Assembly (NCBI RefSeq): GCF_031769215.1
Contig: NW_026782259.1
Location: forward strand, 434,001-498,000
Direction: 5' to 3'
DNA from: Ylistrum balloti
Lineage: Eukaryota
Length of the DNA stretch: 64,000 bases
The position numbers and the translations under genes were made by a program. Numbering within the stretch: position 1 is the stretch's first letter; each line of letters begins with the position of its first letter. Below, piece by piece: positions 10,601 through 61,444 of the stretch. The notes beneath the pieces were generated by a model, which was not told where the DNA came from, did not search any database, and saw only the letters and a list, made by a program, of their open reading frames with translations.

Positions 10601-13600
10601 AACAAAGCCAAAAGTTAATGTTCTGTAAATTTTCAAAGTCATTTTTTAAAAACTTTAAATCATTACGTGTTTCATGAACATTTCCATCTGTGGGAGTAGT
10701 ATATCACAGTGTATGCACAAGCAAATGTAGTCTATGAAGTTGTTCTCCATCAACTCTGATATCTTCCTGGTAGAGATTAAAACAAATGCCAGCAAAGATT
10801 TTGGACAGTAGAACAGAAATGTCCTATGGTTGATAAATTTTAATATTCTCCTGCATTGACCTTGAACACAAACCTCTACATTGTCAGTGGAGTTGGAAGA
10901 AGAGTCTCGCAGCCATGCCCCACCGATGTTCCGTGCAGCTCTGTTGAACATTACCAAGGACATGTTTTTTCCCTGTAGAGGAAGGAGGGCATCATTGTGA
11001 CATCAGCAGAGAGAAACTGAACAATTTACATACAATTACGTTTGCTTACACTGCCTCATGTTTAACACACATGTTTGAGATCTAGACCAATGTCAGTAAT
11101 ACACAAAGTGTAAAGTATATTGTTTCGGAGTAAAAACAGTTTTTGGAAGATAAAAACATTTTCCTGACTACTTCAGTCCTTGTCTAGATAAAGCTACTCT
11201 TACTGAGACTTCTTTGGATTTGGTTAAGAAATTAAAAAAAAACAACATCCAGTTCTTCTCCAGAAATTGCAATAATAAATCGTTACTATCAAAATCCAAG
11301 AGGGCCATCGATCAGACATATTACTTTTCAGGTCAGTCCCAAAATCAGCCAATGCACAACTAGCAACCAAGAGGAACCTGCATATGGGGATGATTGAAGG
11401 CTAAAAACATATCAAATGAGAAGAGTTGTAGTGGCCTTGACCCCGATTCAGTTACCTTCATCACACACTCCTCTTCCGTCTTATCTTTTCTAGTTTTCCT
11501 CATTTCTGTTACCTCCTCCTCAAGTTTACGCTTCTTGTCTGCAGACAACATATCATAAGAGACAAGGAACTTACAGTAAGCATCGTAAAGTTTAGTTCCC
11601 CTATCTTGTGCCTGTAACAATATAAACATTAGAGATGTGTTAAATCAGGAGTTTACAGTAATGATCGTAAATCTCCTATCCTTTTTCTATAAGAAGAAAA
11701 CATTGATTCATGCTATATCAGGAATTTATAGTAAGCTTCTAAAGTTAAATTCCCCCAACCTGTGCCTATAAGAATGAAACAATGCTTCATGAATTTATAG
11801 TAAGCTTCAAAAGTTAAATTCCCCAAATCTGTGCCTATAAGAATGAAACAATGCTTTATGAATTTATAGTAAGCTTCAAAAGTTAAATTCCCCAAACCTG
11901 TGCCTATAAGAATGAAACAATGCTTCATGAATTTATAGTAAGCTTCAAAAGTTAAATTCCCCAAACCTGTGCCTATAAGAATGAAACAATGCTTCATGAA
12001 TTTATAGTAAGCTTCAAAAGTTAAATTCCCCAAACCTGTGCCTATAAGAATGAAACAATGCTTCAGGAACTTACAGTAAGCTTTAAAAGTTTAATTCCCC
12101 TATCTTTCGCCTACAGCATTCACACATCTAAAGCACACCAGGAATAGATGATTGAGTCACCGGACTAAGTAATTTTATGTCATACATAAGTAGTCTGACA
12201 TGCAGTATTACAATCCAGACAGCTTAATCAAATGTATTAAAGATGTCGACCTATGAAACAGAAATGAACCATTGGTTTTTGAGAGAACTTATAGTCTCTT
12301 ACTGATTTAGGAATTCCTATGATGTCTGCAACTTTCAATAATTTCTTCTTTTCAATAACACTCTGCATGCCTCCCAAGTGTTGAATAACAGCTGAAAATT
12401 TACAGATGTCCACCTCTACACCTCCAATCTGAACAGAGCAAACATAGCATACAATGAAATTTTCCCGTCCATGAAAACCATAACTATTGAGGGAGATTTC
12501 TTTTGAAACAATTGCAATTTCTCAAAGTCAACATTTTCACTTTCTTTTTTCCATCATTTTTCATCATAATAACAGTTAAATTGCTGAAAACTGTACTTGT
12601 TTGAACATTTTTTCACAAATTTCATGTTAATGCCGTTATCATTTTAATACACATTGCAGTACTATCAGAGATTGTTACATGGATTTTTTGTCCTTAAGGG
12701 GTTCCATACTTTCACTTTATTTGATAATGCCATGTATAATTGACACTAGATAATTTATTCTCCATAGTTTCACATGGTGATTTGTTGATTGAAGGCTTGG
12801 TAATGTTTCTTTAATTGAATGACTTACGACTGGAAATGGCTCTGACACACCATGAGAGTCAAGATGCTTCTGTATAGCTTTAAGTTGACACACATTGGGT
12901 CCAAACCTGTAGACAGACAACAAATCCACTTGTCTTCAGTTCTATATTTTTTAAACATAGCAGGCTTATTCTGATTAAGTGCCTTTTATAACAAAAGAAG
13001 TGCCTTGAATGCTGAATTGGGTTCATTAAGAACTTCGATCAGGGTATGACTTTTCTGTTTATTGATACTGTGAATGAAATCTTAAATCGAAAGACTGAGA
13101 TTTCCTTGCTAGACAAGCTTGGCTGAGCTCCCTTCCTTAGGTAAAATATGTAACTTGTCACAGCCAATCAGTTGACAGTAAGGGGTGACAGATAGTTATT
13201 TCTATATGTGTCTTTCTCCCAATATCCTATACATACACATCATACAAGTGGTTGATGGAGAGAGGTGTTTATATACATACCTATCATACAACTTGTGAAT
13301 ATACTGCTTTTGTGTGGTGAACCGCAATTCTTCACTGATCTTACTATCGGACTGAAAAAGATGAAATTTTTTATTAAGCACAAGACTGCATAACTACATA
13401 CCAGTAAAACATTAGAATTGTTTTCAAATAATGTTTCACTATTTAATAAACTAAGACACTGTGAAACGCTGTAGACCGGACACACACAAACACTGTAGAT
13501 CAGACACACGAAAACACTGTAAATCAGACACACGCAAACACTGTAGACCTGACACACACAAACACTGTAGATCAGACACACACAAACACTGTAGATCAGA

Positions 13601-16600
13601 CACACACGAACACTGTAGACCTGACACACACAAACACTGTAGACCTGACACACACAAACACTGTAGATCAGACACACACAAACACTGTAGACCTGACACA
13701 CACAAACACTGTAGACCTGACACACACAAACACTGTAGACCTGACACACACAAACACTGTAGATCAGACACACACAAACACTGTAGACCTGACACACACA
13801 AACACTGTAGACCTGACACACACAAACACTGTAGATCAGACACACACAAACACTGTAGACCTGACACACACAAACACTGTAGATCAGACACACACAAACA
13901 CTGTAGACCTGACACACACAAACACTGTAGATCAGACACACACAAACACTGTAGATCAGACACACACGAACACTGTAGACCTGACACACACAAACACTGT
14001 AGATCAGACACACACAAACACTGTAGACCAGACACACACAAACACTGTAGACCAGACACACACAAACAATGTAGACCTGACACACACAAACACTGTAGAC
14101 CTGACACACACAAACACTGTAGACCTGACACACACAAACACTGTAGATCAGACACACGCAAACACTGTAGACCTGACACACGCAAACACTGTAGATCAGA
14201 CACACACAAACACTGTAGACCTGACACACACAAACACTGTAGATCAGACACACACAAACACTGTAGACCTGACACACACAAACACTGTAGATCAGACACA
14301 CACAAACACTGTAGACCTGACACACACAAACACTGTAGACCTGACACACACAAACACTGTAGATCAGACACACACAAACACTGTAGACCTGACACACACA
14401 AACACTGTAGACCAGACACAAACACTGTAGACCTGACACACACAAACACTGTAGACCAGACACAAACAAACACTGTAGACCTGACACACACAAACACTGT
14501 AGACCTGACACACACAAACACTGTAGACCTGACACACACAAACACTGTAGACCTGACACACACAAACACTGTAGACCAGACACACACAAACACTGTAGAT
14601 CAGACAAACACTGTAGACCTGACACACACAAACACTGTAGACCTGACACACACAAACACTGTAGACCTGACACACACAAACACTGTAGATCAGACACACG
14701 CAAACACTGTAGTCCTGAAACTTGGAAACACTGTAGTAGACCTGAAAGTTGGAAACACTGTAGGCCTAAAACATGGAAACACAGTGGACCTCACAGCTGA
14801 TTCACGATACATCACATGTATAGAACACTAGGATTATATAGATAGATGCAAATACTCCTCAATACCAGGTAGACATATCATTCAAATTGAATAAAAGCAG
14901 CTACAATGAAGCATCACCAGCTTATGTCTGATCCATTGATAATTAATAAGCTGCAAAGTAAACTTTACAAATTTTATTGTATCATTACATCCTCATATTA
15001 GGGAGTTATACAGCTCCAAACTGAGGGTACTTAGTTGAAATCGATCAGAAAAACTGTATTTTGTAAAGATGATGAACACAGTCTAATAGCAACTATACAA
15101 TACACACACCTTCCAACTTTGTGGTGGGACGATCTTGCACATTCCATACGGTTCTGCTACCATTGTGACAGACTGTATGTACTTGATAGGATCAGAGAAT
15201 TCTTCCTCATTAGGGTAAAATGTAGGAGCCTCAACAAGTCTGGCAGGCTGCCCTGGCCCAGGAAAAGGCTCTTGTTTCACTTCCTTGTCAACCGACAGGT
15301 TGTCTTTCAGCCTTTTCTTCACTGTAGTGTCCATAAAAATAACAATTGTAGGTTCTATAATACCATTATAAATTAACTATTGTGGTTGTGTGAATTTATC
15401 AATGTGCTAAAGTGATAATGCGCTAAAATTGGATTGCACCACATTAGATATGTTTGCAGTAAAACTGTAGATTTGAATTATAAATATATAAATATATATA
15501 AAATATAAACCTTATTTATTTTACAACAATTGCGAAACAAGTTATGTCAACTTATACTAATCACTCTTGTTGGCCCGGATGTAAGCGCGCGAGGGGTCTT
15601 ATTGTGGGAGGAAACCGGAGTACCCGGGGAAAACCCACGTGGTCGGGTAGGTGACCCCTTACCTTTTCACGTCCGTTCCGGGAATCGAACCCCGGTCGGC
15701 TAGGTGAAAGGCGAGTGCGTTACCACTGCGCCACCCGACCACCCTAGATTTGAATTGACAGTCATACATGTTTTATATAACTTATGGAACTTCAACTTTC
15801 AATTTCTACATATTTTGTTCACTTTAAAACATTATTAGCTAAAATAAGATACTGTACAAGTTTTCTTAGAAACATTTTTGCCAGATATAGTACAAATGAG
15901 ATATTAAAGCTCATATGATGAAGACTGATATTTCTATAAATCATAAATACTTCTTCATACTGGTCTTACCTGAGGGTTTCCGCTTTTGTTTCACAGAATC
16001 AGACCCTGAATTTCGAGATCCTTGCTTGACTGAATCTGACATCAAAATGTCTGTTTTAGAGTCCTTTTCTCCTTTCACTAAAAGTTTTCTCCGTTTCTCA
16101 GTTGGAGATAATGATTCAAATTTCTTTTTCTGATCTATTTTATATTTCACATCATCCTTTATATTTTTCTGTTTGATTTGAGATCGTTTCTTGCTGGATT
16201 CAATAACTCCTTTATTGTTCCCAGCAGTAGCTGGACTGACGGCTGGGATAGTAGACTCCTCCACACACCCCTCTGCTCTCAACACAATTCCTGATCGTGT
16301 ATGAACCCCAGATGAACTATCACATTCTACTTGAGTATTCTTTTGTCCTAAAACTTTTGTATTCTCTGTCTTCTCTGTTTTCACTTTTCTCTTCACTTGA
16401 CGTAATTGAATTTTTCCATGAGTTTTGGCCTTTTGAGATTTTTTTTCCACCTTCTGCAGTCTAGTTTTCTTTAAAGGTGCACTACTGGAAGGGCCTTCAG
16501 AGTCTAGCTCTGATTTACGTTTCCTATTTGTATACGATTCTGGGGATTGTTTAAACACAAAGCTGACCTCATGATCAAATTCATCATCTTCAAGGTAACA

Positions 16601-19600
16601 ACTGTTCCAACGTAGTTTTGCTTTTCTCTGAGGAAGTCTGTGTGCAATAAATTTAGTAGCTGGTTTAAATTTCTTCTTTTTCTTTACAATATTAGCGTTA
16701 CTGAGTTGCCTCCCCTTTTGAATGATTTTTTCTGGAGTTGGTTTTGTTGTTCGTCTGTTCTTTTCTCGTTGTCCTTTAGTTTTCATCTGTTGTCAAAATA
16801 AAACATTGAATAGAATAATTTCACCATAAGGATTACATATATGTAATGGTCTTCACTTATAGCAAAGTTAAGAAGAGTGTACTTTTTATAACATAATTGG
16901 AACAAATCAAATTTTAAATAATTTTCTAAATTATATATGCAACAACATTGAAGTTTCTAAAACAGACATTTGAATTTAATCAATTTCACTGGACAAATTT
17001 CTTTACAATTTTTCTGAATGCAACATATTATGTGTTTTATGTTATTTCTCATAGATAATAAGTATATTAGTAACATATCAAACAGTAAACAAAAAGACTT
17101 TTGTTTGTAAAATTAACATTGAAATAAACAAAAGAAACCTGGTTGGTAAAGTTAACAGTAGCGTTAATGATAAAATAAATTTGAAATTTCAAACCATGCA
17201 ATAAACATAGAGAAAGTTTGTGAGACATGCGAAGGCAATCCTCTCAAGTTTTATATAACAGGGTATCCCAAGAGATGAGTTAAGGGGAATTCCCCAGGTT
17301 TGGTCAATGAAAAATAAGACCATATATACCTGGTAGCCTTTTAGTTTATCAGTAGGTAATACCTTGACTTTAAACTGTAAAAAAATTGTTAGTTCTACAA
17401 AACAAAGTAACTTGTTTTAACATGTAACAAATTTAATATACAAATATGTTTTGCATGCCAACTCAACTGAACTCAAGATGAAATATAACCCACTTACGTT
17501 TTGCGTGGAGCTCTTTTTTAAACAATATCATTATCTCAGCTTCGTAAGTTAACAATAGACAAATCCTTCAGAACTGGCTGGACAAGTCTGGCATACCGCT
17601 CATCATTGGTTACAAAATAATTCTCAACAATACTTCAATTATCATGAACAATACAAGAAATAATCAGGTGTCTTCGCTTGCAAATGAAGTTGTAAGAAGT
17701 AAAAACATTGTCTTTTTATTTGGCAGTTGCAGCTATGGACAACATGCTTGCTGTGTTGTTTAAAACCTGTTGCTAAAGGCAACATGTATGTTGTGTTGTT
17801 TGACAGTTGTTGCCAAAGGTAATACACCTGTTTTCTTGTGTGTGATAGTTGTAGCTGTAAACAACATGTCTGTTGTGTGTGATAGTTGTAGCTGTAAACA
17901 ACATGTTTGTTGTGTTGTTTAAAACCTGTTGCTAAAGGCAACACATCTGTCATGGTTTTTGACAGTTTTAGCTGTAAACAACATGTCTATTGAGTTGTTT
18001 GACAGTTGTAGCTGTAAACAACATGTCTGTTGAGTTGTATGACAGTTGTAGCTGTAAACAACATGTCTGTTGAGTTGTATGACAGTTGTAGCTGTAAACA
18101 ACATGTCTTTTGTGTTGTTTGACAGTTGTAGCTGTAAACAACATGTCTGTTGAGTTGTATGACAGTTGTAGCTGTAAACAACATGTCTTTTGAATTGTTT
18201 GACAGTTGTAGCTGTAAACAACATGTCTGTTGAGTTGTATGACAGTTGTAGCTGTAAACAACATGGCTGTTGAGTTGTATGACAGTTGTAGCTGTAAACA
18301 ACATGTCTGTTGTGTTGTTTGACAGTTGTTGCTGTAAACAACATGTCTGTTGTATTGTTTGACAGTTGTTGCTGTAAATAACATGTCTGTTGAGTTGTAT
18401 GACAGTTGTAGCTGTAAATAACATGTCTGTTGTGTTGTTTGACAGTTGTAGCTGTAAACAACATGTCTGTTGAGTTGTATGACAGTTGTAGCTGTAAACA
18501 ACATGTCTGTTGAGTTGTATGACAGTTGTAGCTGTAAACAACATGTCTGTTGAGTTGCATGACAGTTGTAGCTGTAAACAACATGTCTGTTGAGTTGTAT
18601 GACAGTTGTAGCTGTAAATAACATGTCTGTTGTGTTGTTTGACAGTTGTAGCTGTAAACAACATGTCTGTTGTGTTGTTTGACAGTTGTTGCTGTTAACA
18701 ACATGTCTGTTGTGTTGTTTGACAGTTGTAGCAGTAAACAACATCAATGTTGTGTTGTCTGACAGTTGTAGCTGTAAACAACATGTCTGTTGAGTTGTAT
18801 GACAGTTGTAGCTGTAAATAACATGTCTGTTGTGTTGTTTGACAGTTGTAGCTGTTAACAACAAGTCTGTTGTGTTGTTTGACAGTTGTAGCTGTTAACA
18901 ACAAGTCTGTTGTGTTGTTTGACAGTTGTAGCAGTAAACACCACCATCAATGTTGTGTTGTCTGACAGTTGTAGCTGTAAACAACATGTCTATTGAGATG
19001 TATGACAGTTGTAGCTGTAAACAACATGTCTGTTGTGTTGTTTGACAGTTGTAGCAGTAAACAACATCAATGTTGTGTTGTATGACAGTTGTAGCTGTAG
19101 ACAACATCAATGTTGTGTTGTATGACAGTTGTAGCTGTAGACAACATCAATGTTGTGTTGTCTGACAATTGTAGCTTACTTTCCTTACAAAATTAAATAA
19201 ATCTCATCGAGTAAATTACATCTAATCTGACAAGAACATTTTTCTCTTCACACAATACTGCTAAAAACATTCATCTGATCTCAACATTTATTACAAAAAC
19301 TAAATTCCAAAAGTGGTAAGAAAATGAAAAGTATCTATACAAAGTTTACCCTTTTTATAACTAAGAAGATTGGGCAACAAGAAAAAAATATCATAGTTAA
19401 TTCCTAGGAAAAAGAGAAATACTGGCGTTAAGTAACAATCATGGGATTGGAGAGTCTGTACATCAAAGCACTTACAGTAACATAACAACACTATACACTG
19501 TATATACCCCTGGTATCTAGATATATCAGAAAATAAAAAGATTTCAAACCTAAATATTTGTTAGATAACAGTGAAGAGCCACTTGGGCTGGTAAACTGAT

Positions 19601-22600
19601 AGAGGGGGAAAGTATTAGATAAACTAACACATACAGTATAACAGAGACATACAATTGTAGGGGGATTATTAGGTAAACTCACACACATGATGATAGTGAC
19701 ACTACAACTGTAGGGGGGATTATTAGGTAAACTAACACCCATGATGATAGTGACACTACAACTGTAGGGGGATTATTAGATAAACTCACACACATGATGA
19801 TAGTGACACTACAACTGTAGGGGGATTATTAGGTAAACTAACACACATGATGATAGTGACACTACAACTGTAGGGGGATTATTAGGTAAACTCACACACA
19901 TGATGATAGTGACACTACAACTGTAGGAGGATTATTAGGTAAACTCACACACATGATGATAGTGACACTACAACTGTAGGGGGATTATTAGGTAAACTCA
20001 CACACATGATGATAGTGACACTACAACTGTAGGGGGGGATTATTAGGTAAACTAACACCCATGATGATAGTGACACTACAACTGTAGGGGGGATTATTAG
20101 GTAAACTAACACACATGATGATAGTGACACTACAACTGTAGGGGGGGATTATTAGGTAAACTAACACACATGATGATAGTGACACTACAACTGTAGGGGG
20201 GATTATTAGGTAAACTAACACACATGATGATAGTGACACTACAACTGTAGGGGGATTATTAGGTAAACTAACACACATGATGATAGTGACACTACAACTG
20301 TAGGGGGGGATTATTAGGTAAACTCACACACATGATAATAGTAACACTACAACTGTAGGGGGATTATTAGGTAAACTAACACACATGATAATAGTAACAC
20401 TACAACTGTAGGGGGATTATTAGGTAAACTAACACACATGATAATAGTAACACTACAACTGTAGGGGGATTATTAGGTAAACTAACACACATGATAATAG
20501 TAACACTACAACTGTAGGGGGATTATTAGGTAAACTAACACACATGATGATAGTAACACTACAACTGTAGGGGGGAATATTAGGTAAACTAACACACATG
20601 ATAATAGTGACACTACAACTGTAGGGGGATTATTAGGTAAACTAACACACATGATAATAGTAACACTACAACTGTAGGGGGGATTATTAGGTAAACTAAC
20701 ACACATGATGATAGTGACACTGCAACTGTAGGGGGATTATTAGGTAAACTAACACACATGATAATAGTAACACTACAACTGTAGGGGGATTATTAGGTAA
20801 ACTAACACACATGATGATAGTAACACTACAACTGTAGGGGGATTATTAGGTAAACTCACACACATGGTGATAGTGACACTACAACTGTAGGGGGATTATT
20901 AGGTAAACTAACACACATGATAATAGTAACACTACAACTGTAGGGGGGATTATTAGGTAAACTCACACACATGATGATAGTGACACTACAACTGTAGGGG
21001 GATTATTAGATAAACTCACACACATAATGATAGTGACACTACAACTGTAGGAGGATTATTAGGTAAACTAACACACATGATGATTGTAACACTACAACTG
21101 TAGGGGGATTATCAGGTAAACTCACACACATGGTGATAGTGACACTACAACTGTAGGGGGATTATTAGGTAAACTAACACACATGATGATAGTAACACTA
21201 CAACTGTAGGGGGAATATTAGATAAACTCACACACATGATGATAGTAACACTACAACTGTAGGGGGATTATTAGGTAAACTCACACACATGGTGATAGTG
21301 ACACTACAACTGTAGGGGGATTATTAGGTAAACTAACACACATGGTGATAGTGACACTACAACTGTAGGAGGATTATTAGGTAAACTAACACACATGGTG
21401 ATAGTAACACTACAACTGTAGGGGGATTATTAGATAAACTCACACACATGATGATAGTGACACTACAACTGTAGGGGGATTATTAGGTAAACTAACACAC
21501 ATGATGATAGTAACACTACAACTGTAGGGGGATTATTAGGTAAACTCACACACATGGTGATAGTGACACTACAACTGTAGGGGGATTATTAGGTAAACTC
21601 ACACACATGATGATAGTGACACTACAACTGTAGGAGGATTATTAGGTAAACTAACACACATGGTGATAGTAACACTACAACTGTAGGGGGATTATTAGAT
21701 AAACTCACACACATGATGATAGTGACACTACAACTGTAGGGGGATTATTAGGTAAACTAACACACATGATGATAGTAACACTACAACTGTAGGGGGATTA
21801 TTAGGTAAACTCACACACATGGTGATAGTGACACTACAACTGTAGGGGGATTATTAGGTAAACTCACACACATGATGATAGTGACACTACAACTGTAGGG
21901 GGATTATTAGATAAACTCACACACATGATGATAGTGACACTACAACTGTAGGGGGATTATTAGGTAAACTCACACACATGATGATAGTGACACTACAACT
22001 GTAGGGGGGGGATTATTAGGTAAACTCACACACATGATGATAGTAACACTAGAACTGGAGGGGGATTATTAATTATAACATGCTATCAAAGCACATGTAT
22101 TGTCAGTGGCATGTCTTATCACAAGGGTAGTAACAATACAGGCAGACACTTCCTCATAGTTCTAATAATACCAACACTCACATTTGATTTACATTAGAAA
22201 GAGCAAAAGAATAAACATACAACCCATAGTACATTAATCACATGATGTGTTTGGTCTAATGAATGTTAGACAACATTATGTAATTTTGTTATAAATTCTG
22301 TAATATTACCATGTTTTGATCAGAGCAATTACTCTGCATCTTAGGGACCCTGTCAGATAAAATTAAAATCTAATATATATCCTATGTAAGCTGCTATATT
22401 TAATCTTGATAACAAAGTTTCATTGATGTATCTAAAATGGTTACAAGCTTTATGACAAGAAAATGAGAAATCAACAAAGAAAAATAACTTTCTTCAACTG
22501 ACTGTATAGCATCAACAAGAGACCCAAAGACCCTAACATGTCACCTGAGTTCAATAACTTGTTCTTGTGTCATATGTCATATGAAAATCTTGTAAACAAA

Positions 22601-25600
22601 GTAAGATAACTTTTACTACATGTTGCATATAATGCAAGTGTAAACTGTACAAAATTAACTGCCATCCCCTGTTTAGGATTCTAAGTAAACTTAAATTACT
22701 TTGGGGTCATCAAATCAACTGGTATGTCTTAAAACAGTTGAGAGTGTATCAAAAGTACTACAGAATAGTTATAATCCTACAAACCATGCCAAAAAATCAG
22801 CTATCAGCAAATAGAAAAAGGTACAAAACAGCTATAAGTCAAATACAACCATGCAAATTAGCAATAACCTTATTCTTAATCCTTTCCAAATAGTGCAACA
22901 TAGTGGACATCACAACAATAATGACAAGAGAATATAAAGGTCACATGATGCAGTACAAGTAAGTTACAAGACTGAAACCAGTCCAATGGACCTAAACCAC
23001 CACTGTAGTTCTAATGTTTAGGATTTTCATTTCCGCATGCAATTGATTGGTGATAATGTAAATAAAGCACAGTTAGGGGGAATAACTCTAATAGTATTGT
23101 TAAGGGTTCAAATACTAATATGGTATCAGTTTGATTTTGATAAAGCATGACTAACAGCTACCTGTCCCTTATTTTAATCCTGGAAACAATCCAAATTGTA
23201 ACTCTATCTTTAAGCAAGGGTTCATACAATACCTCAGACCCTTTCTATCCACAAAAAATATTTGTAACAAATTCAAATTAGACTTGTTTTTGTTCATCCC
23301 TTCAGCGCCTTGGAATAGGGACAATATAGCTCAACCTTTAAAAGGTCCTGCACATACCAGTGAAATCAGTTATGGTGTGTTAGACACAGTCACAGTTACA
23401 TAGCACATCATGTGCAAAAAATAGTAACAGACAAATGGGATCTGACACTGTAAAGATGTTTTTATGTCTTTACAGTACGTCTCAGGTGATCCTCAAATAC
23501 TGTAAACATAACACAGATAAACACTATATGGAGCAAAAGCAAAACAACCATATAACCAAACATTACGTAAAAGTACATAAGCATACAAAATGAAAAGCAC
23601 TTTCAACTATAGCACAAGAAAATTCAAAGTTAGAATCAAAACAAAATATGCATTGCAGTCGGGTACCTTGTAAATAACTTAACACAAAGTTTCAATCCAA
23701 TCCATCAGAGGGTGGGAGGGGCAGGGTAGAGTGTTACACTGTATACACAAAGTAAGTCTGTTTAGTGAGGTAACTCTAAAACAGAGGGTGGGAGGGGCAG
23801 GGTAGAGTGTTACACAGTATACACAAAGTAAATCTGTTTAGTGAGGTATCTCTCTAAAACAGAGGGTGGGAGGGGCAGGGTAGAGTGTTACACTGTATAC
23901 ACAAAGTAAGTTTGTTTAGTGAGGTATCTCTCTAAAACAGAGGGTGGGAGGGTAGAGTGTTACCCTGTATACACAAAGTAAGTCTGTTTAGTGAGGTATC
24001 TCTCTAAAACAGAGGGTGGGAGGGTAGAGTGTTACACTGTATACACAAAGTAAGTTTGTTTAGTGAGGTATCTCTCTAAAACAGAAGGTGGGAGGGTAGA
24101 GTGTTACCCTGTATACACAAAGTTAGTCTGTTTAGTGAGGTATCTCTCTATAACAGAGGGTGGGAGGGGCAGGGTAGAGTGTTTTACCAGGAGGTGACCT
24201 GTTATCCTGCTGTATTTCACTATCACTTGCTTTAACAGAGGTAGCATCAAGAGACTTCATCTCCAGTTTGCGTTCTCGAATGGACGTCAGAACAGAGTAA
24301 GGTGGAGCAGGATGAGGCAAAATGGAGGCACTTGCCCTGATTGGACAATTAGCCACCTTTGCATGAACAACAGACTTGGCAAGAGGTGGATATTCATGGT
24401 CTAGTGAAGATGTGGGTGAAGCTATAAGGTGACATGCAGGTGGATCTATGACATGTGACATGGGTGGATCTATACGAACAATTTTGGATGAGGAAGAAGC
24501 TTCCGTGTGAGGTATTGGTGGAGATATTTGAGATCGAGGATTAAGTGCTGACACAGGAGGTAGGAGAAATGAAACAAAAGCTTTTTTTCTAGCTCTTGGC
24601 TTTGAAGAAGGTGTTGAAGTTTTACACTTATACCTTGCAAGAATTCCCTTGTGTTTTGACAGGGTTTTAGGGGAGGGTGACGTCAATGTTGGGGATTCTA
24701 AACTATCTATGAATCCACTGTCGTCAATATTGACAGCACAACCTACAGATAAGGGTGTGGTCGATTTTACAGTTTGCTGAGGCAAAGTTTTTGTAATCTT
24801 ATCTACAGGGTGATGGTCTTCTTCAACACATTTTAAGACTGTGTCTTCAACACATCTTGAGACTTTGTCTTCAACACATCTTGAGACCGTGTCTTCAACA
24901 CATTTTAAAGCTGTGTCTTCAACACATCTTGAGACCGTGTCTTCAACACATCTTGAGACCGTGTCTTCAACACATCTTGAGACTTTGTCAGACTCAATTT
25001 GTTGACTGGTAATTTTTGGTGGTGTTGTTTTGTATCTCTTTCCAACAGTGAGTTCTGAATAAGATGTGCTTGTATCAGATAAAACAGACTCTAGGGGAAA
25101 TGTCCATTGAGAAGGGCTGGAAAATATTGGGTCTTCTGACTCATTGGTTAATATTTCTCCAACATCAACATTAGGGGAATTAGCAGGTGCAGTGTCTGGA
25201 TGGCAGGAAATAACAGGAGGTGGGGCATTGTTTGTAACCTCAATATCTAAGTAACGAGATTGGCACATTTTCATCATAGACTCATGTTCCATACTGAATC
25301 TATCTTTATTCAAAGAATTGAATTGTGAGAAAAGGGGGACAAATACTTCTGGAGGTTTCTCAAAGGCAACGGCAACACTTGTATCTGGTAACTGGGAAGA
25401 TCTTAAAGTATCATTCCCAGACAAAGAAAGGGATTGTGTACAGCAGGATATGACATCACAGCAAACAACATCTTGCAGGGACACTGTTTGGATAGGACAG
25501 GAAATTTCTTCCTCATTGGATATGAAATCACAGGAAACAGAATCTTGAAAAGACAAAGTTTGTGTAGGGCAGGCTATAACATCACCCTCAGTAGAAACCA

Positions 25601-28600
25601 AAGGGATTTGTGTTTGACAGGAAAAGACATCACTGGAAATGACATTTTCAGTGGAAAGAGAATGCATTTGTGTTGGACAGGAAATGACATTCTCAGTAGA
25701 AAGAGAAGGCATTTGTGTTGGACAGGAAATGACATTCTCAGTAGAAAGAGAAGGCATTTGTGTTGGACAGGAAATGACATTCTCAGTAGAAAGAGAAGGC
25801 ATTTGTGTTGGACAGGAAATGACATTCTCAGTAGAAAGAGAAGGCATTTGTGTTGGACAGGAAATGACATTCTCACTAGAAAGAGAAGGCATTTGTGTTG
25901 GACAGGAAATGACATTCTCAGTAGAAAGAGAAGGCATTTGTGTTGGACAGGAAATGACATTCTCAGTAGAAAGAGAAGGCATTTGTGTTGGACAGGAAAT
26001 GACATTCTCAGTAGAAAGAGAAGGCATTTGTGTTGGACAGGAAATGACATTCTCAGTAGAAAGAGAAGGCATTTGTGTTGGACAGGAAATGATGTCACTG
26101 GAAATGGTATCCTCAGTGGAAACGGAAGGGATTTCAGAAGGACAGGATATGACATCATAGGAGATGGCATCCTCAGTAGATCTAGAAGTGGTTTGAGTAG
26201 GAGAGTGGGTGGGGCCCTCACTGGATGAAAGGGTTTGGGTAGAGCAGGGAACATCATTCTCTGTAGATCCAGAAATGGTTTGAGTAGGAGAGTGGATGGG
26301 TTCCTCACTGGATGTAAGGGTTTGGGTAGACCAGGGAACATCATTCTTTGTAGATACAGAAGTGGCCTTAGTAGGAGAGTGGATGGGGCCCTCACTGGAT
26401 GTAAGGGTTTGGGTAAAGCAGGGAACATCATTCTTTGTAGATACAGAAGTGGCCTGAGTAGGAGAGTGGATGGGGCCCTCACTGGATGTAAGGGTTTTGG
26501 TAGACCAGGGAACATCATTCTTTGTAGATACAGAAGTGGCCTGAGTAGGGGAGTTGATGGGGCCCTCACTGGATGTAAGGGTTTTGGTAGAGCAGGGAAC
26601 ATCATTCTCTGTAGATACAGAAGTGGTTTGAGTAGGGGAGTGGATGGGGCCCTCACTGGATGTAAGGGTTTGGGTAGAGCAGGGAATATCATTCTCTGTA
26701 GATCCAGAAGTGGCTTGAAAAGGGGAGTTGATGGGGCCCTCGCTGGATGTAAGGGTTTGGGTAGAGCAGGGAATATCATTCTTTGTAGATACAGAAGTGG
26801 CCTGAGTAGGAGAGTGGATGGGGCCCTCACTGGATGTAAGGGTTTGGGTAGAGCAGGGAATATCATTCTTTGTAGATACAGAAGTGGCCTGAGTAGGGGA
26901 GTGGATGGGGCCCTCACTGGATGTAAGGGTTTGGGTAGAGCAGGGAACATCATTCTCTGTAGATCTAGACGTGGTTTGAGTAGGGGAGTGGATGGGGCCC
27001 TCACTGGATGTATGGGTTTGAGTAGACCTAGTCTCAGTAGATTTAGATGATGTTTGTAATGAGAAAGAAACATCATGAGGGGTGGATACAGTAGAGGTTT
27101 TGATAGGGAAGGAAATATCATCCAAGGTATAAGATGAAGGGGTTTGGGTTATACTGGAACAAGATTGATCTATAAGATCACACTTCAGGCATGCAGGTAG
27201 CACTACACCAGAGAAACCCTGCTTTGGTGACATATCATTATTATCTGAACAGGCAGTACTAGGGTTAGAAGTGCTACACACAGGAGTAGAGTTAACAGTG
27301 ATATCAGCAGTACATATAGGCATTGCATTGGCTATATAGGGTAGATCTCCTACACTACTAGATCTACTAACCCCTTCACCATCTCTCGATTCTTCACCAC
27401 AGCTGTTAGTACCAGTCACTACACTACTCGAGTCCCAAACATCAGTTACCTTGGTCTGTCGTTGATTTCCTGGTTTGTCGTCCACTCCTGACTGATCTAT
27501 AAACAGTGACTTACGCCTGTTTTTTTGGTTTGGTGAAAGTTTTGAAGAGGTCAAAGTTGCAATGGCCTTTCTCTTGATACACAGACGCTCTGCATCAGTC
27601 ATCTTGCCAGGACTTGCTTTACCTCGTGTCCCCTTCACAGGGGAAGGTGTTCCATTTCTATAGGATCGAGTACACTTTGCAGGGGTGACTGCAGGTGATG
27701 CATTTCTTCTCTTCGAAGTTGCCCGTGACCTTTGACCTTGTCGGGTTGGAAAACTTGCCAATCCCCTGGCAGTCTCTGGAGTGCCTGCACATGCACGTGC
27801 AGCTTTCCTGCTTGGGGTGACACGACCACTTGGTGGCATAACCTGTCAAGGAGAAATTATCAAATTCAAATCTCCATACAGCATATCACAGAATCCATGA
27901 AATATCAAGCAGTACTCTATCCAAACTTTGCTGAAAGTAAAGAACATCTTTCATGTCCTAAAATATCTTGCATGAAAAAGTCACATTGCAAGCACAATAA
28001 CTACAGTAATTCCACTCTCCTTGTGAAAACCACAGTACAAGTTCATTTTAAATGATAAATTGTGAAGTTCTCAAGGTGGTATACAGTTTGAGGAACAAAC
28101 AATTAATTTCTCTCCCAGCTTCTAAAATATTTAGGCAAACTATTTGTCAAAAGATTATCTGACAGACAAAATCTAAAAGTTTCAAAGCTTTTAAGACAAG
28201 AATGTATAAGGTTTGATGGACATTTCTAAACTAACTAGAATTACAAGAAACAACTTGACAAGTTAAGGGAAATTAAGAACAGCCTGTAAATGTCATTAAA
28301 AACCTGGACATGTTAGGCAAAATGCCAACATAACATGACAAATGCAATGAGATTTCAGTATTATACACAGAATGAAAGCCAGTATGTACCAGTGGTGCTG
28401 GAGAGTCTGCCACATCATCGGGTACATTACTACAACTAGTACTGCTGGAAGAAGGAGAACTCTCACGCACAAAAGCTCGACCTCGATTAGGTGGTGTTGG
28501 TGGCAGGCTAGTGTCACCCTCGTCTCGGGAGAAATTGAAAAAGTCCAGGTGCGGAGGAAGGGCCTGTGTTCCTATCAACAATAACAATCAATAAGGTATC

Positions 28601-31386: not shown

Positions 31387-32449
31387 GATGGATTTCAGTG
31401 TACACACCAAGTCACACTGGTGTCAGGGTTAGCCAAAGCCTAGGATGTGTGATTCTGCAACATAAACATTCACACTTTGGATATCCTCTACTGTTCTGTT
31501 TATAACTGTCTCACTGCAACAGTGTGATTTATTTTATTTCATTGATTGGAGATATATCCATAAATCTATATTTCAAGTTGAGCACAACCCCTCAAAATGG
31601 ACAATATTCCTGAATTTGCGGGATAGTTATTAATTACCATTTTGAGTACCCAGTTACTTACTGAAATGTAATGTCATTTGAAATAGAAACACATAAAAGT
31701 CTTTTTTGAAACATTTGCAACAAAAAAGTGGGTGATATTTTTACATGGCATAATAACAAATGCAAACTTGTACATTTTTTGTACAAACAGTTGTGAAATA
31801 AATTGTCTCACTTTTTGAAAAGAAAAAAAAACTTGATCACATACATTGTTTATCAACTGCTTTTAGTGTGGCTAAAAACACAGGTAGGTTGGTTGACAAG
31901 TTTTCTGTCTCCGTGATTCCTTCTTGTCAGTGTTATGGCAACTTGTGCAAAACACAGGTAAATTCATTCTCAACTATATATAACATTTGCTCTAAATACT
32001 GCCACTGGCTATAGACTGTAGTCAATGGAGAACAAAGGCAGTGATATATTGCCATTTCAACACAAAGTTATATAATAGAAATGAATGTTTCCTATGCAGT
32101 TATATACATTGTCATATTTGCTATTGGGTTGTGTGTGACAAGATAACACTATTTTTTGTTGCAAACAAAAACTTTGAGTGCTTCTATTTGAGAATGACCA
32201 TGCATGTAAGTAACTACTTATTCAAAGTAGTAACTAAAACCCTCAAATGCATGATTATTACCCATATGCATGGTTGTGCCCAATCTGCATTTGACCGTTT
32301 TACTTTCAAAGAAAAATAAACAAAAAATGTTGCAAATCTTTAAAAGAATTTCACGTGTTTCTCTTACAAATATCCTGTATTCGAATAAAAATATATATAA
32401 TTCACTCAAAACAGCAACTGTCACTCAAATGCAGGACTATATGCAAACA

Positions 32450-33070
32450 TACTGTATGTCTGCGGGTGAACGTAGACGGGTGTCTAGCATGTTCCCCGAC
32501 ATACCAGCTGCATATTATCCGAGTTTTAACAGCCCCCGTATGTTTGAGTTAAACAATTACAAAAATATGTGTTAATGTTTTCACAGAAGTAAGTAAAATG
32601 TACGGCCCAAAATACCAGGTACGCAGGAAGATAATTGGGAAGTCAATCACGCTTATCACGCTAAACGTCACAACACCCCCTACCGGTGTTCACGTTCTCA
32701 AAACTCTAATGAAAATTGCGAAAACGGACGCACCTTCGAAACAACCGTATAACATTGTATCTACATAAGTAAATAAATGTCTATATGGCGATTTTACAAG
32801 TTCGTGCATTAGAGAATACAAGAGCAGTGAAATGTAAAACTTACCATCGACACCCTTTGTTCCAGTGTTTACAATTTGCATGTGTTTCCGGTTTTAAGAA
32901 GCGAATAATAAAGCAAACAAATAAAAAAATCTGAGTCTTAGAATATTTTTTGTGTATTGATTCTTTCTTAAAAAATATTTTAGTGTCCTGTATTCACAAA
33001 AATATCTCCATTTAAAGGTAAATCATATTTTCGTTTGGTTAACAGCGTCTCATCTGCTGCACTATCCAAG
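32450..33070. promoter_or_regulatory. Putative bidirectional promoter JARID2/PIGT with candidate JARID2 5' UTR exon (donor at 32844)
   Basis: Head-to-head genes; locally elevated CpG; minus-strand ATG|GTAAGT donor at 32844; ETS-like CCGGAA at 32886-32891; YY1-like AAGATGG at about 33068. Confidence 0.6.
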
Positions 33071-33275
33071 ATGGTGGAAAGCAGTCGATCGATGCCGGTA
33101 TCGCGGAAGATGATGTGGATATTTTGGTTACCATTGCTCGGATACATCGTACACGCTAAACTTAATGACGAATTTAACGAGGAATTGTTCATTAAACCTT
33201 TTGGTAGTGGACATGTCATGTTTCATTTCCAATTTACAACTAAATGGAACGTCAGCATCGCAGATGAAACAGCGT
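33071..33275 (+). CDS. PIGT: PIGT exon 1 (signal peptide)
   Basis: [29 protein letters not shown]; donor gtatgt. Confidence 0.9.
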
Positions 33276-36200
33276 GTATGTAACTGTCTTACTGTTATGA
33301 CGTGGGGAGCGGGGAATGTAAGACCGCTTTCGCGTAACTAGGTTGAAACGTCCACTGAACATATCATTATTTCGCGATATTGCCAATAAACTGGTGCACC
33401 AGACATGCACTGGATGATGACAATTATATTGTTTCATAATTTAATTAAACAGGAACTAGTAATGAAATAGTTATTTTTTTACCCTTTGCCGAATAACACA
33501 GCATTTCCGAAAATATGTACTTGGAACGGTCATGTTTTATGTATAAAGTCCGAAAACTAGTGACTCTCTCCCAGATAGTTTTGGACAGGTACAGCTTGAT
33601 TACTCAAATTGCATATGCTGAGATCAATCCTTGCATTGCATTCTATTTTACAGATTCAGTCAATCCAACCGTTTCAACCTCTTACACACAAAGGCATTCT
33701 ATGAGAGTTGTCACCCTTAGCACATTTCACACCAGTACTTTTCTGATCCATATCCAATGGTTTGCCCCAATTCTCCAGCATGTCCTTAAGAAAGAAACAA
33801 AGATGAAGGATTAACAAGTTGATTATCTCTGATAAAGGCAAAAACAAAAATTGAAAAGGAAGAGCTTAGTATTAAGAAGTATGTCAGGGGGTAGAAATAG
33901 ATCTTAATGTTGAATGTTTTGTATTTTTTGGGTACACATTTGCATATTTAAACCTGTTACTGATCTGCTATACTTCAGATTGTTTTAATTTTGCAATGAT
34001 GACAGAAATACAATGTTAGATTTCCCTGAGAATTTACATCATGAATGAATGAATGAATGAATGAATGAATGGCAGCTTATTTTTGTTATGCAATGAGATA
34101 ACAAAAAGTTTACAATTGGCACAAATCTATGAAAGCAAACAAATTTATTTGCCACATGAGAGTCACATCCGAAAAATTTTTGTTTGTTTAACCCTTCAAG
34201 CATTTATATTGGATATGTTGTAATAATAAAAAAAAAATGCATGAAATGACAGGAGAGAGAGATACTTATCTCTATACACTCTGTACAGACTACACATCAT
34301 CCAGTTTATTCCATTTCTAATGCAGTTTTCACAAAGAATGATTTCCTATTTGTGATGTATGGTTCAGCGTTATTGAAAATCATTCTGTTGACTATTATCA
34401 TTACATTGATTAACACTTCAAAATGTTTCTTCTTACATCTCTGGTATGGTAGAATCCAATACTCTCCTGGAGTGGGAAGGTCTTAAGATGCATAATTAAT
34501 TTTGTGAATTTCATGAGTTGATTATAATTGTTCATATATAAGAAAATGACTTCTTCAAGCATAGTTTGTGTAATTTACTTTGGAGATGATTTTAAATTAA
34601 TTAGATTAACATGGGATGTTTCTTTAATCTTATGCACATTCTACAATGTATATGGTGTGTATTAAAACACCCTGTAGGTATTGTATGATATAATACACCC
34701 TGTTTGTGTTTTATGAGTTAATAAGTCCTGTATGTATTATGTGAGTTATTACCCACTATCATATGAGTGAATTCATCATGTATACATCATATGAGTTAAT
34801 ACAGCCCATTTACATTCAACAGACTCCCACTACCGTCTATTCCCTAAGTCTCTGGGAGAGGTGATGTCCACATATGGGGTTCAGGAACTGCACCTTAGTC
34901 AGACACAGGGTCTGTGGAGGTACAGACAATGGGGTTACCCTCCAGAGGATGCACCACCAGGAGCTGAACTTTGGACCTGGTTCCAGTCTAACAGAAACAA
35001 GTGAGCTATAATTTAGTATTGTATATCAGGTAATCTGTTCACAATGTTTAATTCAGCCTTTGAATTCATTATTTTTCATTTCCAGAGCCTTGAAGTCATA
35101 TTGTTGACTCAGATACAATGATTTCAAAGTCGCTTCTTAATTGTCTGGTATAACGAATAGAAATTCCTACTTAAACAACTTGGCAGAAGAAATCTTTAAC
35201 AGTTGTAATGGTTGTAAGAGGTAGACAGTTCAGTGTTGGTGTTAAGGCTATGATGTATGGGCAAACTATTGCCTTACTCTGAAAGGGCTCCTGAAACAAG
35301 CCACCCACTCTAATGTCTTGTCATCTGATCACAGTCTACAGTGTTTCCTGCTGCTTTTCTTACATCACTAGTATCAACTGTGAGCGTTGTGAACTGCTTT
35401 TTCTATAATCTGTCCACCCATCAGACAAGTCAGATAACTTTTTTCATTGTTGTTTCATCAGGACTATCCTAAATAGTATTGCAGTAAATTACTTTTTCAT
35501 CACTTTTTTATGCTCCTGAAAAATTTCCAGGGGGCATATAGTTGCCACCTTGTCCATCCATCCATGCGTTCTTTTGTGTCTGAAGCATAACTTTGCCATA
35601 CTTAACCAAGGATCATGAAACTTGATGTATATGTTGATCATACCAAGACGATGTGCAGTGTACAAAATCCAGAACTCGCAACCCTTAATTACAAGTGTAG
35701 CCCTTTGTTAAAAATTTCTTGTCTAGAGTATAACTTTGCCCATAGCTTAGCAAGGATAATGAAACTTAGAGTATACTTTGATCATACTTTGACAATGTGC
35801 TGTGTGCCAAATTCAGGGCCCTCAACCCCTCAGTTACAAAATTACTGCCCTTTGTTAAAATTGTCATGTTCAGAGCATAACTTTGCTTGTATTTAAGGTA
35901 AAATTATGAAACTTTGTGTATACAGTGATCATATAAAGACAATGTGCAGTATACCAGTGTTAGAACCTGCAACGCCTTAATTTTAGAGTTATTACCCTTT
36001 GTTAAAATTTTTGTCCTGAGCATAACTTTGCTTGCATTAAAACGAAGATAATGAAATTTGGTGTATACATTAATTGGTCATATTAAGAGAATGTGCAGTA
36101 TATCAAAATCAGGGCCTGCAACCCCTTGATTACAGAATTATGGCCCTTTGTTAAAATTTTATAACCAATGTAGTCGTTTTTGGGGAGCATTCATCAGTTT

Positions 36201-39200
36201 CTCTGATATTCTTTTATTTAACAGGTCAGATCAAGCTGTCCGAGATAAGTTGTGGTCAAATTACGTAAATGCTTTGTCAGGACTCTTTTGTTCTTCCCTC
36301 AACTTCATGGACAGCAAAGCTACAGTCAGTCCACGGTGGACATTTCGGCCACAGGGATTAGCATCAGAATATTATTCCATGGACTGGCGAAACCTGAAGT
36401 ACTCGGCTCTGCCTAGAGAGGTCGTTTGTACCGAGAACCTTACACCATGGAAGAAACTTCTGCCATGTGATTCAAAGGTAACAATGTCTTATTAGTAACT
36501 ACCTGTTGATGTTGTGAATTATATTGCAATTCCATAGTCTAGTGCCAGGAATTTTTCACTTGCATTGACAGTTTTTATGGTATTTTGTATTACCTTACAA
36601 TTAGTAGCCATCCAGCATGTGCTTCAGGAACCTGTGACACGATAATAAATCCATAGATATGTGAAACTTCTCTGCATGAAAAACTACACCTCATGAAACA
36701 CCACTGTGTATCAAAAATGACTAGATTGGTGTTGAGAAATTGAGAATGACATCTTGATTCATTAATGTCAAAAATCTTCAAATAACAAAGGAAATATTGC
36801 AAACCACTTCTGTTTGAGTACAATTTGTTTACACCATGGGAACTATAAGCAAAAATTTATCAATATTGATATGAATTATTACTATTTATAAAGAGAGGGA
36901 GTACAGATAAAACACAGTAAAAGTCTTATGTGTGAAAGTTAATCACAGCAAATTTTTACTGGTGCAGAGATCATGAAAAGATGGCTTACTGTATCAAAAA
37001 TTATATTTTAATTTTTTACAAAAAATTTATAATGAATGATTTTAAGGAACAAATACCCAATACTAGTACATTTGTGTGTCAATGTTTGGAGGAGATTATG
37101 TGTTGTTCATGGACCAGGATTAAGGATACGTTATTGGTAACAAAAGCCTAACAAAAGTACCTAATAAGCAACTACAGGGACTGCTTGGTAACCTGGCTTC
37201 AGGATTTCCTACTCGTCATTGTAGATGAGATATTTGACTCGGAATTGTAAGGCATTTTGTAATGCTGGTAATTCACTTTGTTTATTTTGTTTGTAGGTGG
37301 GATTATCTACATTGTTCAATGCCATCAAGTTACATGACTCATCATACCAGTCCATAGGGCTACATGTGAGGCCTATCTGTCGGGTAAGTAAATCCTTCTA
37401 CCAGTCCATAGGGCTACATGTGAGGCCTATCTGTCAGGTAAGTAAATCATTCTACCAGTCCATAGGGCTACATGTGAGGCCTATCTGTCAGGTAAGTAAA
37501 TCATTCTACCAGTCCATAGGGCTACATGTGAGGCCTATCTGTCAGGTAAGTAAATCATTCTAACAGTCCATAGGGCTACAGGTGAGGCCTATCTGTCGGG
37601 TAAGTGAATCATTCTTCCAGTCCATAGAGCTACATGTGAGGCCTATCTGTCGGGTAAGTAAATCCTTCTACCAGTCCATAGGGCTACATGTGAGGAATAT
37701 CTTTCAGGTAAGTAAATCATTCTACCAGTCCATAGGGCTACATGTGAGGCCTATCTGTCAGGTAAGTAAATCATTCTACCAGTCCATAGGGCTACATGTG
37801 AGGCCTATCTGTCAGGTAAGTAAATCATTCTACCAGTCCATAGGGCTACAGGTGAGGCCTATCTGTCGGGTAAGTGAATCATTCTACCAGTCCATAGGGC
37901 TACATGTGAGGCCTATCTGTCGGGTAAGTAAATCCTTCTACCAGTCCATAGGGCTACATGTGAGGCCTATCTGTCGGGTAAGTGAATCATTCTACCAGTC
38001 CATAGGGCTATATGTGAGGCCTATCTGTCAGGTAAGTAAATCATTCTACCAGTCCATAGGGCTACATGTGAGGCCTATCTGTCAGGTAAGTAAATCATTC
38101 TACCAGTCCATAGGGCTACAGGTGAGGCCTATCTGTCGGGTAAGTGAATCATTCTTCCAGTCCATAGAGCTACATGTGAGGCTTATCTGTCAGGTAAGTA
38201 AATCATTCTACCAGTCCATAGGGCTACATGTGAAGCCTATCTGTCAGGTAAGTCAATCATTCTACCAGTCCATAGGGCTACAGGTGAGGCCTATCTGTCG
38301 GGTAAGTGAATGAAGGAGTTAAGGACACTTTAGTTGGATCAGTGCTGTTTTTAAGAGTGCTATTTTATACAATTTCACATTTACAGGATTCCTTAGTGCA
38401 TTTGTTGATGAGATTGCTTTGTAAAAGAACTTATTGAGTTGTTTTGTACAAGTGTTAGTGGTGCTCACAAAATAAAGAGTTTTGTTATACTAAGTTGTCC
38501 ATTAAATCATAACAGGATGCAGCGTGTACCAAGTCATCTGTGGAGCTAAAGCAGACACTGACAGTGGTGTTCGATCCCACTACAAGTAGATTTGGACGAC
38601 AGAGTAAGTATCTTAACATCATTTATGTTGGCTTGAATTCAAAGTGAAATATTTCACATATTTTTATAATCTACAGCACAGAATGTGAGTATGTTTGGTC
38701 ACTCTTTATGTTCCAAGTAAAATTTATGATGTGTTTTATAATCTACAGCGTGGAGCTTTAGCAGTATGTTTGGTAAACCTTTACGTTCCCAGTGCCCTCT
38801 AGCCTCCAGGAGCAATGTCTATGTAGACATCACAGATAAAGATGTAAGTCATACCTTTAGTGTGTTATCTCAGTAAGTCATACATTTAGTGTTTTATCTC
38901 AGTAAGTCATACCTTTAGTGTGTTATCTCAGTAAGTCATACCTTTAGTGTGTTATCTCAGTAAGTCATACCTTTAGTGTGTTATCTAAGTAAGTCATACC
39001 TTTAGTGTGTTATCTCAGTAAGTCATACCTTTAGTGTGTTATCTCAGTAAGTTATACCTTTAGTGTGTTATCTCACAAATAAGTCACTGACAAATGACAA
39101 TTTAAAAAATTGAATGTTTTATTTCTGTCAGTGAAAAGCAGATTTATGTCTTATGGGGATTTTCTCCATATCATATGTTTGCTATGGCTATGCCTTGATA

Positions 39201-43275: not shown

Positions 43276-43619
43276 TTGGTAGTCTGTAGATTACTCCTAT
43301 TTTTTTTTATCTCATTCTCGAATCCCATGGTATCAAAAATTACCCTTCGCTGATTAACAAGTTTTGTTTTACCCATTTTTTCTTTGCAATATAAAATGAA
43401 AAAAACTCAAAATCACACTCCCATGAAATAAAAATTCTGTTGGAGAATAGTTGGAAACCAGCCTATAATAGCAGCAAAGGAATTATATATCGTAGGACCT
43501 GGCACTTCTATAGAAAATCAACTGTACATGTTAGAAGCATGAGAAACTATTAAGTTGTTGCTGAAGGAAGAAAAGATATTGACTGAAGTTCAGATTCCTA
43601 CATCTGTTACACAGTGACA

Positions 43620-51203: not shown

Positions 51204-51604
51204 TTAAATGAACGCCAAGTCATTATCTCCCGATGTCTCTAGATCTGTAACCACGGGATCCGCCGTTGCTATGGTCGATGATCCATTCCGACGCTGGTCT
51301 GGTGTTGGTGTGAGTAGAGTGAATCCACGAGGTTCCGGTGTTGGTTCGGACAACACGGAGAGTTGTGATCCCGACAAATCTATGGGTGAAACACACCCGC
51401 TAGCACGTGAGGCATATGGCGGGGGCGGGGACGTGGGTAAGTGTGACTGGTCGGTGTTGTACGCTTCTGAAGGAAGGTGTTGTGACGTTCTTCTGTGACT
51501 AATAGCTCCAGGTATTACCAGTGACGGCCGTTGTTGCCAGGCCCTGGACGGAGAATACACTGGACATGTCCTTACCGCCTGTGAGTAGTCAGGTGGTTTC
51601 GGTT
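51204..51604 (-). CDS. Shisa-like gene exon 3 (Pro-rich cytosolic tail)
   Basis: ccaacag acceptor; PKPPDYSQAV...SPPPPYASR...; TAA at 51204. Confidence 0.85.
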
Positions 51605-61005: not shown

Positions 61006-61444
61006 ACCCCATCATTTTAAAGTTCGAGGAATACAGAGGTGTGCTAAAGATTTGTTTCATTTTAGCTATATTGTGATGTTCAATATTTTAATGGAATTCA
61101 GTTATGGAACTTTATACTGCCGCGTTGTGGAATTTAATCAGAAAGAACAGCCCCGACGCCAGATACTGTCAGGGGATTCATTATCGGCAACATTAAAGCC
61201 AAATATCGTGTTATGCCATTGAGTATAATGCAAAATCTCTGATGATAAAAGTCAAATAAGCAGCTGAACCGGCTTGAACTTGTCCCCGACGGTTAGGAAA
61301 CCACATAAGTTTGAAGTTCGAGCGTCCGAATCTGATCATTGCAATGGAACAGTTAATCAACACTGAAGCGTTTAGATGAAGTATTTATCAAACAGGTTTA
61401 CTATAGAGAAGTTTCCCCGATATATCAGGCGCTTGGGTTTACAT

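Follow-up and report, generated by a model that had tools for sequence, protein, structure and literature searches.

The short tandem arrays examined here lie at exon-intron junctions of two neighbouring genes, JARID2 and PIGT, in a 64,000-nucleotide (nt) stretch of the genome of the saucer scallop Ylistrum balloti (RefSeq assembly GCF_031769215.1, contig NW_026782259.1, forward-strand positions 434,001 to 498,000), referred to below as the window. These arrays are minisatellites of the known 'mirage' type in a new host lineage, and by themselves they show no new mechanism. The likely explanation for them is that short tandem duplications arise frequently and are then filtered by selection. 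Minisatellites abound in the window as a whole: Tandem Repeats Finder (TRF) gives about 26 distinct arrays for its 64 kb. Those at or near junctions have periods of 54, 29, 69, 72 and 27 nt, with head-to-tail units that match each other at 92-98%. Positions of all features are given in Table 1.

To scan the 58 JARID2 and PIGT junctions for copies of themselves, 25 nt of exon plus 20 nt of intron were sought in the adjoining intron, and the scores were set against those of shuffled queries. Exactly four junctions stand out. Two are PIGT donors, at exon 4 (z 33) and exon 6 (z 7.6), and two are acceptors, at JARID2 exon 11 (z 10) and PIGT exon 6 (z 8.5). A previous sequence-only reading of the window had named all four; TRF and inspection of the letters found every array of that reading where it had been placed, and its copy numbers for them (18 and 8 for the PIGT donors, 2 for the exon-6 acceptor, 8 for the acceptor of the ARID exon) were borne out. 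It had also named a fifth, a 'giant-exon donor', which turned out to be the region of a stop codon and is described below. When the units of the arrays were compared they were unrelated to one another in sequence, and the conclusion that a process rather than a repeat family is at work holds, given independent, sequence-unrelated arrays seeded on exon boundaries. In every one of the four arrays the real splice site is the outermost copy.

Each unit of the exon-4 donor array consists of the last 39 nt of exon 4 and the first 15 nt of intron 4, and the array fills 0.9 of the 1.1 kb of that intron. The array opens with the real junction, CGG|GTAAGT, as unit 1, to which unit 11 is identical; the decoys read CAG|GTAAGT in 10 units and CGG|GTAAGT in 7, with an in-frame stop in one of the 17 and an open frame in the other 16. 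The spliceosome is confronted, as the sequence-only reading held, with up to 17 near-identical decoys. Additionally, 10 units carry a pyrimidine-rich tract followed by CAG|GTAAGT, a juxtaposed acceptor-donor motif of the recursive-splice-site type, and are formally complete GT..AG mini-introns of 54 nt. The motif comes as a side effect of the copying, since the exon at this junction ends in (C/A)GG. At exon 6, the unit of the donor array starts exactly at the donor GT (intron base +1) and has no exon sequence inside. The single acceptor decoy lies 72 nt upstream of the real site and includes the first 45 nt or so of exon 6; it has decayed to about 80% identity, with three small indels. Weak 28-nt repeats just upstream of the exon-2 acceptor were also checked, and no homology to that junction was detectable.

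In JARID2, the decoys upstream of exon 11 hold the acceptor and about 48 nt of exon start and are 78-82% identical to the real junction, while five young copies are about 96% alike. The sixth array of the sequence-only reading, close to the exon-13 donor, is indeed present, but its score against the donor junction (z 1.9) is not significant in the window alone. An origin from the donor was suggested solely by Pecten, where the orthologous array, with a 26-nt unit, begins right at the donor, and because of this the Ylistrum array is probably old and donor-derived. The corresponding Argopecten intron is without an array and starts with GTAAAG, the first bases of the unit. A decayed relic at the exon-15 donor was recognised by eye, its scan score not being significant. 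The 24-nt array in intron 7 showed no detectable homology to a junction.

The annotated JARID2 protein uses the authentic sites. When the 21 JARID2 exons are joined they reproduce the annotated 'protein Jumonji-like isoform X2 [Ylistrum balloti]' (P0002) with all 1328 residues identical, which identifies the window as Y. balloti, and mapping this protein on the window gives a single GT-AG solution for 20 of 20 introns. It uses the authentic acceptor at 11611, the last and 3'-most of its array, and the donor at 10345. For PIGT, the 10-exon model with the first exon-4 donor has an open frame of 619 amino acids, its exon peptides match PIGT of Argopecten, Pecten and Mizuhopecten at 96-100% when compared exon by exon, and the orthologues of other scallops have canonical lengths of 612-620 amino acids. 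Spliced contigs of the small run X6, the only RNA-like one, confirm three junctions of the model. This run is listed as 'DNA?' and proved to be transcript-derived: it has GT..AG joints at 40451>40908 and 41154>41410, and exons 2 and 3 are joined in it. The sequence-only reading had allowed that the decoys might be used, and no sign of such use or of another function was seen. By analogy with intron 7 of human F7, the first PIGT donor is probably the one chosen.

The arrays are not assembly artefacts. In a check with short reads from three independent runs and two organisms, contigs end at 37374 and restart at 38224/38255 around the exon-4 array, and they end at 38873 and restart at 39015/39035 around the exon-6 donor array, so they break and resume exactly at array edges in all three runs. 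Contigs one unit long are covered 2-8 times as deeply as the local sequence, and the 72-nt exon-6 acceptor copy lies inside a single contig in X1, X3 and X5. The idea that the arrays are collapsed or expanded mis-assemblies draws on the fact that short-read contigs cannot span them, so that copy numbers rest on the assembly. However, with these breaks and with arrays at the same junctions in the assemblies of three other species, it has next to no probability.

The syntenic gene pair was compared in Argopecten irradians (L001), Pecten maximus (L002) and Mizuhopecten yessoensis (L003), and junction arrays were found in all three. The exon series is constant in the four scallops, with 21 exons in JARID2 and 10 in PIGT, whereas the arrays vary. 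At the PIGT exon-4 donor, Ylistrum has 18 copies of 54 nt and Pecten 52 copies of 53 nt with the same 39+15 breakpoints; Mizuhopecten has 37 copies of 45 nt with breakpoints at 24+21, and Argopecten has none. At the JARID2 exon-11 acceptor, the 69-nt unit of Ylistrum and the 80-nt unit of Mizuhopecten end at the same exon-side position (+48), the 67-nt unit of Argopecten ends at +55, and Pecten has no array. The exon-15 donor carries 78-nt arrays with identical breakpoints in Pecten (5 copies) and Argopecten (33 copies), which the Ylistrum relic shares; this donor is outside the Mizuhopecten locus. The exon-13 array is common to Ylistrum and Pecten. For the 29-nt, 8-copy array at the PIGT exon-6 donor, Argopecten has one echo, and the intron is outside the Pecten and Mizuhopecten loci. 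Pecten has further arrays at the JARID2 exon-2, exon-9 and exon-10 donors and at the PIGT exon-2 acceptor. The one at the exon-9 donor (L002 26790-34863) consists of about 208 tandem copies of a 39-nt unit made of exon end plus GTAAGT; at 8 kb it is the largest junction array found here, and the exon-9 donor of Ylistrum lacks an array.

On the scallop tree (Mizuhopecten,(Ylistrum,(Argopecten,Pecten))) (PMC11354973), several arrays are older than the Pectininae radiation and were lost in single lineages. The high identity within arrays is therefore a sign of concerted evolution and not of a young age. At the exon-4 donor and the exon-11 acceptor, the differences in breakpoints suggest at least two births each. 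Two other duplications in these loci should be mentioned. In Mizuhopecten PIGT (L003 1698-2033), a 173-nt duplication of 1.9 copies lies over the exon-5 donor, where Ylistrum has no array. In Argopecten irradians, a tandem duplication of about 930 bp (L001 34687-35404 versus 35616-36344) contains two whole JARID2 exons, whose copies are 100% identical in protein; the gene is annotated 'LOW QUALITY PROTEIN', and this may be a real duplication or an assembly error.

The proposed course of events begins with short tandem duplications (about 25-90 bp) that scallop genomes would form at a very high rate. The duplicated piece would sometimes span an exon-intron junction or a stop codon, with the copies landing on the intron or 3' untranslated region (UTR) side. 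The exon body would keep just one attached copy, the first in the case of a donor or a stop and the last in the case of an acceptor, and therefore normal mRNA would still be made and the duplication would survive. Duplications inside an exon would survive only in frame, for which the giant open reading frame (ORF) described below, with periods of 24, 45 and 87 nt, may be compared. Once formed, an array may grow, shrink and be homogenised by unequal exchange, and it may persist for a very long time. The first PIGT donor would be chosen through exon definition together with a 5'-to-3' preference for the most upstream donor, and with ten GT..AG mini-introns in the array many wrong pairings would presumably still collapse to the normal mRNA. 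Both the duplication mechanism and the selective filter are inferred. The ten mini-introns would agree with a filter against exonisation, and so does the sequence of the expanded decoys at exon 11 in Ylistrum and Mizuhopecten, which read ATAAAT at the place of a cryptic GTAAGT in the real Ylistrum exon. Unit lengths that are multiples of 3 are frequent among exon-containing units, but this excess does not reach significance over the four species, whose arrays are not independent.

Whether junctions attract arrays at all depends on how many would be hit by chance. In the model used, each array was collapsed to one unit, seeds were placed uniformly over the gene and seeds wholly within exons were excluded; an array of 24-75 nt then includes a junction with a probability of 5-21%, because 58 junctions are packed into about 27 kb of sequence after collapsing and the introns are short. 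With all 12 arrays counted for the window, 4 are at junctions against 1.9 expected (P 0.09; 1.84 and P 0.089 for Ylistrum in the comparison of genera), and when long-period transposon-like repeats are left out the count is 4 of 10 against 1.1 (P 0.018). The corresponding figures are 6 of 25 against 2.40 in Pecten (P 0.025), 2 of 12 against 1.99 in Argopecten (P 0.64) and 3 of 11 against 1.61 in Mizuhopecten (P 0.17), and the four genera pooled give 15 of 60 against 7.8 (P 0.005), with the reservation that the species are not independent. Counting the ORF-end and exon-13 arrays as well raises the window to 6 boundary arrays against 1.8 expected. The anchoring on exon boundaries described by the sequence-only reading thus comes down to a modest excess, about twofold.

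This excess is an argument for a mutational bias in which duplication starts preferentially at exon-intron boundaries, some junctions being true hot spots, for example through transcription- or splicing-linked DNA damage. Such a bias would also account for the differing breakpoints at the exon-4 donor (39+15 in Ylistrum and Pecten, 24+21 in Mizuhopecten) and the exon-11 acceptor (+48 in Ylistrum and Mizuhopecten, +55 in Argopecten), and for a 29-nt array that begins at the very first intron base. However, the excess is slight, three of the four loci do not reach significance when taken singly, the species are not independent, and the excess would be equally large without any mutational bias if exon-adjacent arrays survived longer. 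Identical breakpoints mean that common descent explains most of the sharing between genera, and no motif is common to the array units. A GGTAAG-like hot-spot motif, on either strand and in most arrays, was considered and rejected, as donor motifs are not enriched: donor-like 9-mers occur in 7 of the 26 window arrays against 5.6 expected from random non-repeat segments (P 0.32), and in 2 against 0.9 at a stricter cut. We therefore regard a junction-targeted bias as unlikely. That the decoys are used and kept by selection, as U1/U2AF decoys or enhancer pads, as in-frame isoforms or as recursive sites, is very improbable. Arrays do persist at the same junctions across genera, the exon-4 unit is in frame at 54 nt and open in nearly all decoys, and the ten mini-introns have the recursive-type motif. 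Yet Argopecten PIGT is intact without the exon-4 array, neither period nor unit sequence is conserved between genera (54, 53 and 45 nt at one junction, 69, 67 and 80 nt at the other), annotated proteins have canonical length, the 29-nt unit would shift the frame, an intron 4 of only 1.1 kb has no need of recursive splicing, and comparable decoys are silent in lancelet and in F7.

Several observations nevertheless weigh against frequent duplication plus a selective filter as the full account. The roughly twofold junction excess persists. The apparently repeated gain of arrays at two junctions, with different breakpoints, is poorly predicted by pure chance. The ten CAG|GTAAGT decoys are closer to the consensus than the real exon-4 donor, and run X6 covers PIGT exons 2-3 and 8-10, not 4-7, which leaves room for decoy use. 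If pectinids do have a real junction-directed process, in which particular junctions repeatedly spawn decoy arrays that have been kept since before the Pectininae radiation, it could consist of splicing-linked DNA damage or of selection of the arrays as splicing buffers; taken jointly, this is quite improbable.

The closest known counterparts are the lancelet mirage minisatellites in Adh3, troponin C, globin (BflGb6/BflGb9) and PGBD5, whose unit spans a 5' or 3' intron-exon boundary, many units keeping AG/GT, and which evolve in concert while mRNA splicing is normal (PMC3087553; PMC3902484). The four scallop arrays resemble them in that the unit is an exon edge and/or splice site and the real junction is the end copy. 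They differ in the host, a mollusc; in their size, which reaches 18 copies in Ylistrum and, in JARID2 of Pecten, 208 copies over 8 kb; and in that one scallop array spans a stop codon rather than a splice site. Several scallop arrays are also shared between genera, and to our knowledge such sharing has not been shown for lancelet mirages. In intron 7 of human F7, the first element of a 37-bp variable number tandem repeat spans the exon-intron boundary, and only the most upstream of the identical donors is used (PMC1557585). PIGT likewise has an authentic donor followed by near-identical pseudo-donors; those of F7 stay silent. However, F7 is a single locus in an array-poor genome, the scanning rule was tested in mammalian cells and not in molluscs, and ten of the PIGT decoys are a closer match to the consensus than the authentic donor is.

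Two other models are touched on by the exon-4 array. As in the Rogers model of intron gain by AGGT tandem duplication, its unit has AG|GT and ten units complete 54-nt introns; unlike in that model, the duplicates lie within an existing intron, and the intron gain considered in the sequence-only reading is not seen, since there is no new intron position in any of the four scallops. As in the recursive splice sites of long insect and vertebrate introns, pyrimidines and CAG|GTAAGT are juxtaposed in ten units, but here the intron is short and the Mizuhopecten motif is out of register (TAGG|GTAAGT). No report of junction minisatellites in bivalves was found in the literature; an abalone paper describes an intronic minisatellite without linking it to a junction.

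The array that spans a stop codon belongs to the giant S/T-rich ORF of JARID2, for which a search with the 1237-residue translation returned matches in scallop proteins only. Exon 5 of the Jumonji isoforms corresponds to its first 471 nt (27842-27372); in all four scallops these isoforms exit the ORF at an internal donor (27372) and continue with exon 6, while isoforms X1/X2 of the Mizuhopecten Jumonji gene ('flocculation protein FLO11-like') read the whole ORF through to the stop. The giant ORF is thus most likely an alternative terminal exon, as in these Mizuhopecten isoforms, and its product looks like a short N-terminal part of JARID2 fused to a long repeat tail. Its C-terminal 190 residues or so are conserved among scallops, and the end, ...PPTLCYREIPH-stop, is conserved in Mizuhopecten and Argopecten. 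Three coding minisatellites lie in frame within it (24 nt in 7 copies, 45 nt in 10 and 87 nt in 10), all with periods divisible by 3. In the array at its end, the first unit comprises the final 16 codons, the stop codon (24134-24132) and the 3'UTR bases that directly follow. The proposed giant-exon donor, GGTAAAAC, was rejected, as it represents the codons Gly-Lys-Thr. These lie in a C-terminus whose conservation in Mizuhopecten and Argopecten extends as far as the stop, and the array therefore copies the ORF end and stop codon, not a splice donor.

Other repeats and ORFs of the window are listed here for completeness. Repeats with a period of 147-155 nt, at 35615-36159 and 8181-8459 in the window and at 4659-5519 and 33250-34382 in L001, represent a dispersed element and not a local minisatellite, with a k-mer depth of about 2,600 against 15 in the flanks and the 155-nt unit also present in Argopecten introns. 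In PIGT intron 3, a stretch of 281 bp (36782-37062) is missing from three DNA runs, which have CAGATT in its place; this is an insertion/deletion polymorphism, perhaps of a small mobile element. Between 42000 and 64000 there are about 10 further large arrays, to which no gene model could be assigned; three examples are in Table 1. The minus-strand ORFs at 51207-51626 and 52608-52949 look coding, being PPxY-rich with one transmembrane stretch.

Table 1. Genes, exons and arrays of the window, with positions counted from its first base
Feature	Position	Strand	Description
PIGT exon 4 (model)	37297..37383	+	ends ...HVRPICR
PIGT exon-4 donor array	37345..38311	+	18 units of exactly 54 nt
PIGT exon 6 (model)	38749..38843	+	
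PIGT exon-6 acceptor copy	38662..38748	+	one decoy + real site
PIGT exon-6 donor array	38844..39075	+	8 units of 29 nt
JARID2 exon 11	11456..11611	-	end of ARID domain
JARID2 exon-11 acceptor array	11647..12127	-	7 decoys + real site, 69-nt period
Array after JARID2 exon-13 donor (10345)	9175..10305	-	27 nt, about 42 copies, begins 39 nt past donor
JARID2 exon-15 donor relic	7540..7619	-	decayed, 1-2 copies of 78-nt array
Giant S/T-rich ORF	24135..27842	-	1237 amino acids
Array at giant-ORF end	23706..24183	-	72-78 nt, 6.4 copies
JARID2	31386 to 4520	-	21 exons
PIGT model	33071-41755	+	10 exons, head-to-head with JARID2
Array in 42000-64000	43612-44884		17 nt, 71 copies
Array in 42000-64000	59803-61015		33 nt, 37 copies
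Array in 42000-64000	61447-63015		38 nt, 41 copies

For gene prediction in bivalves these results are a warning, as decoy exon edges yield spurious protein hits and the end of the giant ORF was mistaken for a donor. If a junction-directed process did exist, scallops would be a natural system for the study of choice among identical sites and of junction-seeded intron growth. As they stand, the arrays provide natural test cases for how the spliceosome settles on one site when up to 17 decoys are identical to it or stronger. Mirage minisatellites, so far described from lancelets and single human genes, are common in a mollusc family, where junction arrays account for much intron growth and can outlive genus-level splits.

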